A stretch of DNA of 64,000 nt, taken from NCBI RefSeq assembly GCF_963921235.1, contig NC_086102.1, forward strand, positions 177,692,001 to 177,756,000, read 5' to 3'. Made by a program: the position numbers and the translations under genes. Numbering within the stretch: the stretch's first letter is position 1; every line of letters starts with the position of its first letter. The notes beneath the pieces are model-generated. The model searched no databases. It saw only the letters and a program-made list of their open reading frames with translations, and was not told the DNA's origin. Below, in pieces: positions 76 to 63,818 of this stretch. This DNA is from Mobula hypostoma. Lineage: Eukaryota.

Positions 76-579
76 TGTGGTGTCTGTGGTGGCCAGTGCT
101 GTCATGTTTGCTGTTGTGTGCTGGGGCAGCAGGCTGAGGGTACCAGACACCAACAGAATCAATAAACTCATTCGTAAGGCCAGTGATGTTGTGGGGATGG
201 AACTGGACTCTCTCACAGTGGTGTCTGAAAAGAGGATGCTGTCCAAGTTGCATGCCATCTTGGACAATGTCTCCCATCCACTACATAATGTACTGGTTGG
301 GCACAGGAGTACATTCAGCCAGAGACTCATTCCACCGAGATGCAACACAGAGTGTCATAGAAAGTCATTCCTGCCTGTGGCCATCAAACTTTACAACTCC
401 TCCCTTGGAGGGTCAGACACCCGGAGCCAATAGGCTGGTCATGGACATTTCATAATTTACTGGCATAATTTACATATCACTATTTAACTATTTATGGTTT
501 TATTACTATTTATTATTTATGGTGCAACTGTAACGAAAACCAATTTCCTCCGGGATCAATAAAGTATGACTATGACTAT
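76..579 (+). mobile_element. 5'-truncated Rex1/Babar-like LINE (ORF2 C-terminus and 3' tail)
   Basis: ORF 77..433 ends HPLH...PRCNTE.HRKSFLPVAIKLYN; AATAAA and (TATGAC)n tail; near-identical copy at 49188-49503. Confidence 0.8.
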
Positions 580-1189: not shown

Positions 1190-2060
1190 CACCTTTTCTA
1201 AGCCCTTCCCCAATTGGGGTGGGCAGTGCGGTCCCTAAGTAGGGCTGGTCAGTCGCATGGGTCTGCCGAAAACAGCTGCCACTCTTCCCAGCTGCTAGTG
1301 ATCAAATACCCTGTGCTGCTGCCATGCAGGGTTCTGATTAGGAGTTCCCAGTCCATTCGTACTTGCTCCCATTGCCAGATGCCTCATCACCGTCAGACTT
1401 CAACCATATGTGAGGTCCAAGTATTGTTCACCGTGGTCAGGGGTGGGGACCTATGCACGGAAGATCTTAAAGTGCCACAGCGGGTGCGCCATTCCCCAGT
1501 AGCACTATCTTCACCATGTTGAGGTAAATCCCGATGGCAAGGGTGATCCCAGGACAACCGGTCCCACATCTTGGGTGCAGGAGGCTTCCGGGTCCTTTGT
1601 CTGCTAAGGCCCGCCTATTGCGCGCCGCCCGCGCATTGCCTTTCTGTCAGGGTGTTCTCCCTTAGCCTTGTCTCAACAGACTTACTACAAGGCAGTCGGG
1701 CTATTTGCCCATAGCTGGGGCAGTGGTTGACGGGCACCAGGGCATGTCCACACAGTGGTGGGCTTGCCCGCCACGTCTCTGGGGCCCACTGCTGCTCCGA
1801 GATCCCCTGTAGTTTAGCCTGGGACTGTAAGATACCCAGTTTCCATGTGTGGCCCCAAGGAGGCACTGCAGGAGTCTTGGTGGTGGAGAGGCTCTGTACT
1901 GGCAGGAGGAGGCTTACCCACTCGGTTCCTCTTTTCACCCTTTATTAAGAAGACTAGCCAGCGGCAATAGCTGTAAGCAGAGAGTAGCAAGCGGAGAGCA
2001 CTATGCGGTATACAGCATGCACTAACTACAAGCACTACTACACTACTGCACTAGACACTT
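1190..2060 (-). mobile_element. GC-rich 5' leader of an RTE-clade LINE, truncated before the ORF
   Basis: GC-rich structured island with no credible protein; ends TTAGGGACCGCACTGCCCACCCCAA..GGGAAGGGCTTAGAAAAGGTG, resembling (from recall) the pre-ORF segment of fish RTE elements; HDV-like fold at its 5' end. Confidence 0.6.
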
Positions 2061-2081
2061 CACACACACACACACACACAC
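1804..2081 (-). ncRNA. Putative HDV-like (nested double-pseudoknot) self-cleaving ribozyme
   Basis: Minus strand: P2 CTCCTGCAGT (1874-1865)/ACTACAGGGG (1813-1804); P3 GCC/GGC; L3 TCCTTGG; P1-3' CACACAT; P1.1 GG; P4 CTGGG/CCCAG; J4/2 GCTAA with catalytic-C equivalent at 1817; P1-5' GTGTGTG from the (GT)n at 2081-2061. Confidence 0.75.
2061..2081 (+). repeat. (CA)10 microsatellite
   Basis: Direct reading. Confidence 0.95.
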
Positions 2082-2085
2082 TAGA

Positions 2086-2258
2086 GGCCGGTGATAGAGC
2101 AGCATCAGGACTGGTCTTCAAGGCGGATGGTCCCGAGTTCGAATCCGGCCGGTCCCAACCTACTTTCGTATCTTGCCATGAAAACCCTACGGACAACTAC
2201 ACTATCCACCAAGTCGCCAGGGCTCGACGATGAGTCGATGGCACTGAACAATAACAAC
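2086..2258 (+). mobile_element. tRNA-derived SINE with RTE-like tail
   Basis: tRNA-like head with perfect B box GTTCGAATCC; tail TATCTTGCCATGAAAACCC...GGCACTGAACAATAACAAC. Confidence 0.7.
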
Positions 2259-2282
2259 AGAGACAGAATGCATGACCAAACA

Positions 2283-4039: not shown

Positions 4040-4603
4040 GGTGAGTGAGAGAGAAAGAGCAAAGAAAAAAGAGAAGGGTGGGGGAGAGGGAGATAGAGGG
4101 GATTAAGGGAGAGGGGGAAGAGGGGGGAGAGTGGAGGGGTAGAGAGGGCGGAAGAGGGAGAGAGAGAGGGGGCGGGAGGACGAGACAGAGGGGGCGGGAG
4201 GGCGAGACAGAGAGGGCAGAAGGGGGAGGGGAGCGGAAGGGAGGGGGGGCAGAAGGGAGAGAGAGAGAGGTGGGGGGCGGAAGGGAGAGAGAGAGGTGGG
4301 GGGTGGAAGGGAGAAAGGGGGGGCGGAAGGGGGAGAGAGAGAGAGAGAGAGAGAGGACGGAAGGGGGAGGGGGGCAGAAAGGAGAGAGCGAGTGCAGAAG
4401 GGAGAGAGAGAGAGAGAGAGAGGACGGAAGGAAGGGGCAGAAGGGAGAGAGAGGGGGCGGAAAGGAGATAGAGAGAGGGCAGAAAGGAGATAGAGAGAGG
4501 GCGGAAGGGAGGGGGGCAGAAGGGGGGGCGGAGGGAGGGGGGGCTGAAGGGAGAGAGAGAGAGAGAGGGCAGAAGGGAGAGGGAGGGGGAGGCGGAAGGG
4601 GGA

Positions 4604-4656
<53 letters not shown>

Positions 4657-5355
4657 CGAGCGCGCAGAAGGGAGGGGGGCGGAAGGGAGGGAGAGAGTGC
4701 AGAAGGGAGAGAGAGAGAGGACGGAGGGGGGCGGAAGGGAGAGTGGGGGGCGGAAGGGAGAGAGAGGGGGCGGAAGGGAGAGAGAGAGGGCAGAAAGGAG
4801 ATAGAGAGAGGGCGGAAGGGAGGGGGCAGAAGGGAGGGGGGCGGAAGGGAGGGAGGGGCGGAAGGGCGAGAGAGAGAGAGGGCAGAAGGGCGAGAGAGAG
4901 AGAGGGGGAGGAAGGGCGAGAGAGAGAGGGGGCGGAAGGGGGAGAGAGAGAGGGGGCGGAAGGGGGAGAGAGAGAGGGGGCGGAAGGGGGAGAGAGAGAG
5001 GGGGCGGAAGGGGGGAGAGAGAGAGGTGGGGGGCGGAAGGGAGAGAGAGAGGTGGGGGGTGGAAGGGAGAAAGGGGGGGCGGAAGGGGGGGCGGAAGGGG
5101 GAGAGAGAGAGAGAGAGAGAGAGAGGACGGAAGGGGGAGGGGGGCAGAAAGGAGAGAGCGAGTGCAGAAGGGAGAGAGAGAGAGAGAGGACGGAAGGAAG
5201 GGGCAGAAGGGAGAGAGAGGGGGCGGAAAGGAGATAGAGAGAGGGCAGAAAGGAGATAGAGAGAGGGCGGAAGGGAGGGGGGCAGAAGGGGGGGCGGAGG
5301 TAGGGGGGGGCTGAAGGGAGAGAGAGAGAGAGGGCAGAAGGGAGAGGGAGGGGGA

Positions 5356-5438
<83 letters not shown>

Positions 5439-6890
5439 CGAGCGCGCAGAAGGGAGGGGGGCGGAAGGGAGGGAGAGAGTGCAGAAGGGAGAGAGAGAGA
5501 GGACGGAGGGGGGCGGAAGGGAGAGTGGGGGGCGGAAGGGAGAGAGAGGGGGCGGAAGGGAGAGAGAGGGGGCAGAAAGGAGATAGAGAGAGGGCGGAAG
5601 GGAGGGGGCAGAAGGGAGGGGGGCGGAAGGGAGGGAGGGGCGGAAGGGAGAGAGAGAGAGAGAGAGAGAGGGCAGAAGGGCGAGAGAGAGAGAGGGGGAG
5701 GAAGGGCGAGAGAGAGAGGGGGCGGAAGGGGGAGAGAGAGAGGGGGCGGAAGGGGGGAGAGAGAGAGGGGGCGGAAGGGGGGAGAGAGAGAGGGGGCGGA
5801 AGGGGGGAGAGAGAGGGGGCGGAAGGGGGGAGAGAGAGGGGGGGCGGAAGGGGGGAGAGAGAGAGAGAGAGAGAGGACACAAAAGGGAGAGAGAGAGGGG
5901 GGCAGAAGGGAGAGAGAGAGGGGGGCAGAAGGGGGAGAGAGAGAGAGAGGGAGGGGCGGAAGGGGGAGAGGGGGGGCGGAAGGGGGAGACAGAGAGGGGG
6001 CGGAAGGGCGAGAGAGAGAGGGGGCGGAAGGGAGAGAGAGAGGGGGAAGAGGGGGGGAGGGGCGGAAGGGGAGAGGGGGGGGGGCGGAAGGGGGAGACAG
6101 AGAGGGGGGAAGGGGAGAGAGGGGGAAGGGGAGAGAGGGGGGAAGGGGAGAGAGGGGGAAGGGGAGAGAGGGGGAAGGGGAGAGAGGGGGAAGGGGAGAG
6201 AGGGGGAAGGGGAGAGAGGGGGAGAGAGGGGGAGAGAGGGGGAAGGGGAGAGAGGGGGAAGGGGAGAGAGGGGGAAGGGGAGAGAGGGGGAAGGGGAGAG
6301 AGGGGGAAGGGGAGAGAGGGGGGAAGGGGAGAGAGGGGGGAAGGGGAGAGAGGGGGAAGGGGAGAGAGGGGGAAGGGGAGAGAGGGGGAAGGGGAGAGAG
6401 GGGGAAGGGGAGAGAGGGGGAAGGGGAGAGAGGGGGGCGCGGAAGGGGAGAGAGAGAGGGGGGGCAGAAGGGGGGAGAGAGAGAGAGAGAGAGAGGGGCA
6501 GAAGGGGGGAGAGAGAGAGGGGGCAGAAGGGGGGAGAAAGAGAGAGGGGTGCGGAAGGGGGAGAGAGAGAGAGGGGGGTGGAAGGGGGGAGAGAGAGAGG
6601 GGGTGGAAGGGGGGGAGAGAGAGGGGGTGGAAGGGGGGGAGAGAGAGAGGGGGCGGGTGGAGAGAGAGAGAGGGGGGTGGAAGGGTGGGGGGGGCGGAAG
6701 GGTGAGGGGGAGAGAGAGGGGGGGGGCGGAAGGGTGGGGGGAGAGAGAGGGGGGGCGGAAGGGTGGGGGGAGAGAGAGGGTGAGAGAGGGTGAGAGAAAG
6801 GGAGAGAGAGAAAGCAAGAGATAGAGCAAGTGAGCTGGTGTGAGAAAAAGAATGAGAAAAAGAGAGAGAAAAAGAGAAAGGAGAGAGAGA
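4040..6890 (+). repeat. About 2.85 kb polypurine (GA/GGAA/GGCGGAAG) complex satellite with higher-order duplication
   Basis: Almost purely G/A on +; landmark GAGCGAGCGAGCGCGAGCGCGCAGAAG recurs at about 4647 and 5429; 16-mer GGGGGAAGGGGAGAGA array at about 6105-6435. Confidence 0.97.
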
Positions 6891-7049
6891 GGATGTTAGA
6901 TAAAAATTAAGTAAAAATAAATAGACCAATATATACACACACACGTGATCAGGATTTATTACAAAAATGTTAACTGATTTTGAATTTGATTTTCCAATTA
7001 CTGTTTAGGCATGCAAAGTTCTTAACTTATTGAAGAAGAATAAGATTAC

Positions 7050-63818
<56,769 letters not shown>

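Follow-up and report, generated by a model that had tools for sequence, protein, structure and literature searches.

A candidate hepatitis delta virus-like ribozyme in the 5' untranslated region of a fish LINE, with a GT repeat as its proposed P1 strand

Can a GT microsatellite complete the fold of a ribozyme? The question is raised by a stretch of 64,000 nt from Mobula hypostoma (contig NC_086102.1, positions 177,692,001 to 177,756,000), which is referred to here as the window and numbered from its first letter. An earlier note had proposed on its minus strand a ribozyme of the hepatitis delta virus (HDV) type, whose P1 helix is closed by a GT tract across a joining segment (J1/2) of about 185 nt. 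By comparison with its relatives, the window from 2081 to 1190 (minus strand) is identified as an old 5' fragment, without open reading frame (ORF), of a long interspersed nuclear element (LINE) that is common in fishes and encodes an endonuclease and a reverse transcriptase (RT) in a single ORF. It is likely that the 5' untranslated region (UTR) of this LINE encodes an HDV-like double-pseudoknot ribozyme, in which the GU run at the 5' edge serves as the 5' strand of P1.

The fold and its conservation among relatives

The elements of the HDV fold named in the earlier note are all present on the minus strand of the window (Table 1), and P1, P2, P3, P1.1 and P4 follow each other in the nested double-pseudoknot order both in the window and in 12 aligned copies. 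P2 of the window copy pairs in nine of ten positions with a single C.A mismatch, which reproduces the former count. The J1/2 segment measures 186 nt, and the hairpin proposed within it reappears as helix A, recovered by RNAalifold with compensatory changes. The plus strand at 2061-2081 reads (CA)10.5.

A total of 13 independent relatives were recovered from fish genomes and metagenome assemblies, their DNA being taken from the encoding contigs and from one pattern scan of metagenome contigs; the window itself was also used. L011 to L013 were fetched by a pattern composed of P3, L3, the P1 3' strand and the start of P4, so they provide no evidence for conservation of these parts and are unbiased for P2 and the remainder of P4. 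Twelve diverged copies were aligned with MAFFT, blind to structure (alignment A5). Outside the core the copies differ by 20-30%, and the core is kept. The two inner pairs of P3 are present in 12 of 12 copies (one as G-U), and the outer pair is G-C in the ten copies having its 3' C. L3 follows the consensus UCCNCGU with U, C, C and G invariant, and the P1.1 GG, invariant in the 12 copies, pairs with the CC of L3 in all of them. J4/2 reads GC(U/C/A)AA in every copy, so that its C and AA are invariant. The proximal pairs of P4 are conserved, while the distal P4 pair is A-U in seven copies and G-C in two; P4 is shortened in L007.

In alignment A5, 87.5% of the cells are paired, against 82.6% in shuffles, none of 500 of which reaches the observed value. 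Seven pairs are changed on both sides (10 of 500 shuffles), and slid controls stay at or below 64% paired. A second alignment (A6), which was fitted to a model and leans towards the structure used for fitting, gives 90.6% of cells paired and eight pairs changed on both sides. Covariation across diverged copies, which the earlier note had named as a check on P2, P3 and P4, is found in P2 and in distal P4; P3 and P1.1 hardly vary and are therefore uninformative on covariation either way. P2 displays changes on both sides in six to seven of its ten pairs (seven in A6) and occurs in at least five mutually incompatible sequence types, namely CTCCTGCAGT / ACTGCAGGGG (type 1), CTCCTGGTGT / ACACTGGGGG (type 2), CCTCCAGATGT / ACACCTGGGG (type 3), TCTCGTACAC / GTTGTACAGG (type 4) and CCTGCCAG / CATGGCAGG (type 5). 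Cognate P2 duplexes were calculated at about -10 to -18 kcal/mol (-6 in the decayed L009), and duplexes between the most different types mostly at -3 to -8 kcal/mol.

The J1/2 insert is conserved in structure as well. RNAalifold on 11 copies yields helices A, B and D, all of which carry compensatory changes. Helix B is GCUGG/CCAGU in six copies and ACCGG/CCGGU in five, and its pair 198-265 is correspondingly U-A in six and C-G in five. Helix D is AGGAG/CUCCU, and changes on both sides are found in A and D. These helices fold most of the insert, so that the linkers to P1 and P2 in the window copy are about 11 and about 23 nt long, respectively.

At 72% nucleotide identity over 2 kb, the relative L013 is assigned to this LINE family as well; it is organized in a compact form, where (GT)n directly abuts P2 and the entire J1/2 domain is absent. 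The Rfam model RF00094 aligns with L013 over its full length (model positions 1-89, 24.7 bits, E = 0.076), and the P1 columns of the model fall on GUGUGUG / CACACAU. This is the strongest single datum for the GT run as the putative P1 strand.

Table 1. Features of the fold and of the LINE fragment in the window
Feature	Position	Strand	Remark
P1 5' strand, proposed: (GT)10.5 run	2061..2081	-	eight GUGUGUG registers
J1/2 domain, 186 nt, between P1 and P2	1875..2060	-	structured insert
J1/2 helix A, GCAGTAGT with GCTATTGC	2049-2042 with 1971-1964	-	RNAalifold
J1/2 helix B	1962-1958 with 1902-1898	-	RNAalifold
J1/2 helix D	1930-1926 with 1911-1907	-	RNAalifold
P2 5' strand CTCCTGCAGT	1874-1865	-	
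P3 5' strand GCC	1864-1862	-	
L3 TCCTTGG	1861-1855	-	C1860 and C1859 are the P1.1 partners
P3' GGC	1854-1852	-	
P1 3' strand CACACAT	1851-1845	-	
P1.1 GG	1844-1843	-	
P4 CTGGG / CCCAG	1839-1835 / 1823-1819	-	plus a distal 3-bp stem, decayed in the window copy
J4/2 GCTAA	1818-1814	-	C1817 is the equivalent of the catalytic C; then A1815, A1814
P2 3' strand ACTACAGGGG	1813-1804	-	A1810 makes the C.A mismatch; relatives have G
Rest of the LINE 5' UTR	1190..1803	-	copy ends at 1190, just before the ORF start of relatives

The LINE that carries the fold

Between 1190 and about 2051 the window is covered by stacks of Logan contigs from several species, which marks this part as a repeat. The stop of the contigs at 2051 was considered as a family boundary and rejected, being an artefact of the skipped repeat at 2052-2089. 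A minus-strand ORF spanning the core (1618-1938) was used as a search handle; it finds the proteins P0001 and P0002, and a profile search adds 40 more. On the contig of P0002, genes with Exo_endo_phos and RVT_1 domains are located downstream on the same strand, and the gene models P0005, P0009 and P0011 connect the core region to an endonuclease start. The endonuclease lies 3' of the core on the same strand in L006, L007, L010, L011, L012, L013 and L014. A plus-strand element with a 3' (CA)n tail, in which the motif would be antisense, was rejected in view of these endonuclease and RT genes downstream on the motif strand.

An intact ORF of 1098 aa with the domains Exo_endo_phos and RVT_1 is present in L012, with the endonuclease at residues 34-260 and the RT at residues 584-856. 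About 615 nt separate the core from its ATG, and the 3' UTR of about 55 nt terminates in (CAAG)n. The endonuclease is of the apurinic type. The single ORF, the short 3' UTR and the (CAAG)n tail are compatible with RTE architecture, and the database names are uninformative on membership in RTE. Named relatives of the L012 ORF come from teleosts of several orders. The 1098-aa protein is encoded with 100% identity on 40 contigs, a uniformity that suggests a very young LINE family, possibly still mobile. Some of these contigs are labelled as human gut metagenomes and presumably hold fish DNA.

The window copy was placed in this family mainly through L001, which is 80% identical to window 2062-1190. 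Beyond 1190, L001 continues and resembles the N-terminus of the L012 ORF in one frame, whereas the window turns unrelated. A unit of 870 nt with a true 3' boundary at 1190 was rejected, since L001 runs on past this point. Pfam finds nothing in the local ORFs of the window, and the core pattern has no match in prokaryotic genome contigs and none in viral contigs.

Two further observations were made on the 5' UTR of the family. At about 1712-1701 (minus strand), L002, L006 and L007 have TATGG/GTAAAT, which resembles a 5' splice site (GCAAAT in the window copy), and in the gene models P0005 and P0009 this point is joined straight to the start of the endonuclease. The LINE may have a real intron in its 5' UTR, or the models may be an artefact of annotation. 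In L015 (1-210) and L021 (1-145), part of the same 5' UTR is repeated in inverted orientation, head to head upstream of the element, which could reflect 5' inversion or an assembly chimera.

The P1 partner, the GT flanks and alternative readings

The GT tract at 2081-2061 is the sole perfect partner of CACACAU within 2300-1875; another perfect match at 2323 belongs to an unrelated repeat. Most copies have CACACAY or ACACAU as P1 3' strand; L010 (TACACAT), L008 (CTCCCAT) and L009 (CACGCAC) are exceptions. A perfect partner (7 of 7) is found 195-265 nt upstream of P3 in the window, L002, L006, L007, L010, L011, L012 and L014, which amounts to eight of ten long copies, and the best one in L008 pairs in six of seven positions; the background rate of such a partner is 2.4% of 80-nt windows. 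Homology between copies stops at a GT run, which is located at the 5' edge of L002, L006, L007, L010, L011, L012 and L014 as well as of the young copies that keep the leader described below. In L006 and L011 the run consists of just GTGTGTG, as long as P1 itself, and the mutual homology of these two copies begins at its first G. L010 pairs GUGUGUA/UACACAU and L008 pairs GUGGGUG/CUCCCAU, each with one change on both sides relative to the common type, and the closing pair of P1 is G.U or G-C. The GT tract, put forward in the earlier note as the best partner of P1, is supported as the only good one, at the edge of homology in related copies.

The ORF of L012 recurs unchanged on nine further young-copy contigs, together with an identical copy of the putative ribozyme (100.9 bits each). 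Their shared leader consists of TTAGACGATCATCACACAGGG, an internal GT run and then GAAGCGTC. A GT run of 9-34 nt precedes the leader in seven of seven young copies that keep it, with unrelated DNA beyond, and the (CAAG)n 3' end is followed by GT-rich sequence in nine of ten young-copy contigs. L014, from a chromosome-level assembly, has GT runs at both ends. Since GT repeats are found on both flanks of full-length copies, insertion into GT microsatellites is favoured, and the LINE probably targets them; the flank sample comprises about a dozen copies, and contigs from metagenomes are prone to break off at repeats. The earlier note had left the GT tract as either target site or own 5' end of the element; the flanks on both sides lean to the target. 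A second class of 5' ends, seen in L024 (1-100), L001 (1-10) and window 2061-2081, starts at the internal GT run, reads (GT)n followed by GAAG(C/T)GTCT and is 27-35 nt shorter than the copies with the TTAGACGATCATCACACAGGG leader. Either cleavage at the internal run or joining by microhomology could explain this class.

From the fold and its flanks we infer catalysis, the cleavage site and a role in 5' joining as follows. The element would be transcribed from upstream, for example within a host intron, with the upstream half of the GT target serving as the P1 strand. The core lies about 200 nt inside the element, and the J1/2 helices would bring P1 and P2 together. The ribozyme would then cut 5' of a G in the GU run and leave an RNA with the 5' end GUGUGUG..., where the dinucleotide repeat would permit several pairing registers; some 30 nt further in is the internal GT run, where the second class of copies, including that of the window, starts. 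The GU kept on the RNA would give a (CA)n end of the cDNA, which might anneal to the target's upstream half, as proposed for R2 with 28S sequence. A wider picture is conceivable, although it falls somewhat short of being probable: that a fish-wide LINE seeks out GT microsatellites and takes over the microsatellite itself as substrate strand for its ribozyme, that cleavage slides along the repeat and the leftover GU guides 5' joining by microhomology, that upstream GT repeats in transcribed introns become potential self-cleavage sites, and that the J1/2 of about 190 nt is an added regulatory or protein-binding module.

Several points weigh against a ribozyme with the GT run in P1, besides the lean of alignment A6 and the pattern-fetched origin of L011 to L013 mentioned above. 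L004 and L009 are without a good P1 partner, and the covariation of P1 rests on two copies (L008 and L010). A GT run is complementary to CACACA by nature and could exist for insertion reasons alone. The scan with HDV models, proposed in the earlier note, finds no HDV-family match for the window copy in Rfam even at E <= 10; the long forms have no RF00094 match either, and L013 falls short of the gathering threshold of 50 bits. The fold is not a member of the curated RF00094, though it is of the same fold type. The window copy also departs from the family: L3 is UCCUUGG instead of UCCUCGU (positions 5 and 7 differ), P2 has the C.A mismatch, distal P4 is broken by G-to-A changes, and an ORF is missing.

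As a ribozyme, the window copy is accordingly judged from its sequence to be probably weak or dead. In our own judgement it would rather fail than cleave in vitro, while young copies are very likely to cleave. Cutting of the host intron, which the earlier note had expected of an active copy, is doubtful for the window copy, as it is an ORF-less 5' fragment and is off consensus in L3, P2 and distal P4.

The best surviving alternative, though an unlikely one, is a non-catalytic structure of the 5' UTR, either a binding site of the element's own protein or a structure at the start of translation, with HDV-like topology and with the GT run as insertion target only. GT on both flanks would explain the 5' run without any role in pairing, catalysis is read from the fold, and the same region of R2 is bound by the R2 protein and has been suggested to assist translation (PMC6765202). 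However, the invariant residues in the fish LINE are just those of HDV catalysis (C and AA of J4/2, U, CC and G of L3, and GG of P1.1), conservation keeps the P1 3' strand complementary to the flanking run, and the compact L013 aligns end to end with the HDV model.

It is very improbable that the ribozyme is real and takes its P1 5' strand from GAGTGYGTAAG, a site inside the element (window 1921-1915) that lies some 45 nt upstream of P2. The site reads GTGTGTA in L001, L002 and L010 and would form six to seven of seven pairs there, and position 1918 is T in most Logan contigs of organisms A and B. Against this, it reads GTGCGTA in L004, L006, L007 and L011, and other unpaired variants are found in the window, L008, L009 and L012, so that at most five of seven pairs form in eight of the 11 long copies aligned. 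The TG forms look like CpG decay, a cut at this site would leave the element's template without its first 140 nt, and the segment is absent from L013. GAGTGYGTAAG was rejected as P1 partner, since good pairing is found in three copies only.

The frequency of the fold by chance was assessed with descriptors. A strict descriptor (P3, L3 UCCNNGN, a terminal U in P1', GG, P4 with 5 bp or more, C in J4/2, and P2 of 9 bp with at most one mismatch) matches the window once, and no match occurs in 300 dinucleotide shuffles. With a lax descriptor the window yields five cores, and the motif of the 5' half alone is expected 0.25 times per window. Our own rough estimate amounts to about 1.6e-3 chance matches per window; chance matches would thus be expected in a genome-wide scan, and the case rests on comparative evidence and not on the descriptor count. 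Minimum-free-energy folding of the window copy gives ordinary z-scores (+2.4 and -0.4), which is what a double pseudoknot should yield. For a mere chance likeness within a repeat, without functional RNA, one could cite the five lax matches, the z-scores and the silence of Rfam on the window copy, but this reading is hardly credible given the empty shuffles of the strict descriptor, the conservation and compensatory changes in 12 diverged copies, the fixed place in the 5' UTR of the LINE and the compact variant L013.

Other sequences surround the LINE fragment in the window. The GT run adjoins on its upstream side a tRNA-like head of a short interspersed nuclear element (SINE) in opposite orientation (2087-2276, plus strand), with an acceptor-like GGCCGG and the T-loop GAGTTCGAATCC; ARAGORN makes no call on this stretch, which is repeated according to Logan contigs. 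It is followed at 2277-2600 by a very high-copy repeat, for which contig depth sums to 1e5 to 1e7 in three species; the window contains six further copies (e.g. 57243-57387 and 31587-31720). A low-complexity tract of about 2.8 kb rich in GA/GGGA occupies 4075-6891 and gives rise to a spurious minus-strand ORF of 985 aa. Fragments of other LINEs are found at 77-433 (plus strand; a C-terminal ORF piece without Pfam match) and at 25513-26016 (minus strand; an RT fragment 29% identical to the L012 ORF).

Comparison with known systems

HDV-like ribozymes at the 5' ends of LINEs are established in insects, in trypanosomes and in R2 elements. The fold type, the position at the 5' end of a LINE, the long J1/2 and a flank-derived P1 are already known from other elements. 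No family in Rfam captures the fold of the fish LINE, and in the literature we found no report of an HDV-like ribozyme in an abundant apurinic-endonuclease LINE of fishes, nor a description of a dinucleotide-repeat P1 strand or of compact and expanded forms in one family. If active, the fold would add a large vertebrate family of self-cleaving RNAs, whose natural substrate helix is a dinucleotide repeat with several registers, and would tie microsatellite targeting to ribozyme processing as rDNA targeting is tied to it in R2. The presence of a compact form and of forms with a J1/2 of 190 nt in one family offers a comparison that can inform on the role of peripheral domains. For annotation, intronic copies could be flagged as possible co-transcriptional cut sites.

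The ribozymes of HDV and CPEB3 share with the fish fold the order of helices, P3 GCC/GGC, the GG of P1.1 and, with P1 as proposed, a G.U wobble at its base. The earlier note placed the window copy in an intron of ADCY10, which would give it an intronic setting like that of CPEB3. L3 is UCCUCGC in HDV and UCCNCGU in the fish LINE, and J4/2 is GCGAA in HDV and GCNAA in the fish LINE. Unlike HDV and CPEB3, the fish fold has a dinucleotide repeat in its proposed P1, is set in a retrotransposon and scores below the Rfam threshold.

R2 has active ribozymes with J1/2 loops of 216-498 nt and separations of more than 700 nt between P1 and P1', takes the P1 5' strand from the upstream 28S flank in many lineages, and retains flank sequence on its RNA that is proposed to guide 5' joining (Eickbush and Eickbush; PMC3774820). 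As in R2, an HDV-like fold stands at the 5' end of a non-LTR element that would be co-transcribed with its surroundings, the P1 strand would be derived from the flank, and the size of J1/2 is within the range of active R2 ribozymes. R2 possesses a restriction-like endonuclease and one rDNA target, whereas the endonuclease of the fish LINE is apurinic-type, its flank is GT, and the register of pairing is not unique. The J1/2 of the fish LINE also differs in having its own conserved and covarying helices, with compact and expanded forms in one family.

In large HDV-like ribozymes, a helix in J1/2 (P1.2) 'pinches' P1 and P2 together and speeds catalysis (PMC4908430), and drz-Agam-2 and other ribozymes of RTE and baggins elements are located at the 5' ends of promoterless apurinic-endonuclease LINEs (reviewed in PMC6765202). 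The fish LINE resembles the latter in carrying the fold at the 5' end of an apurinic-endonuclease LINE, and its J1/2 helices match the 'pinch' of P1.2. In contrast to the fold of the fish LINE, drz-Agam-2 and the other RTE and baggins ribozymes belong to insect elements and have a much shorter J1/2 and a P1 of unique sequence.

Apurinic-endonuclease LINEs that target microsatellites include Mino (AC repeats), Kibi, Koshi, Waldo and Dong, and the review of these elements mentions no ribozyme for them (PMC3812793). Like LINEs of the Mino type, the fish LINE has one kind of dinucleotide repeat on both sides of its copies in the sample of about a dozen.

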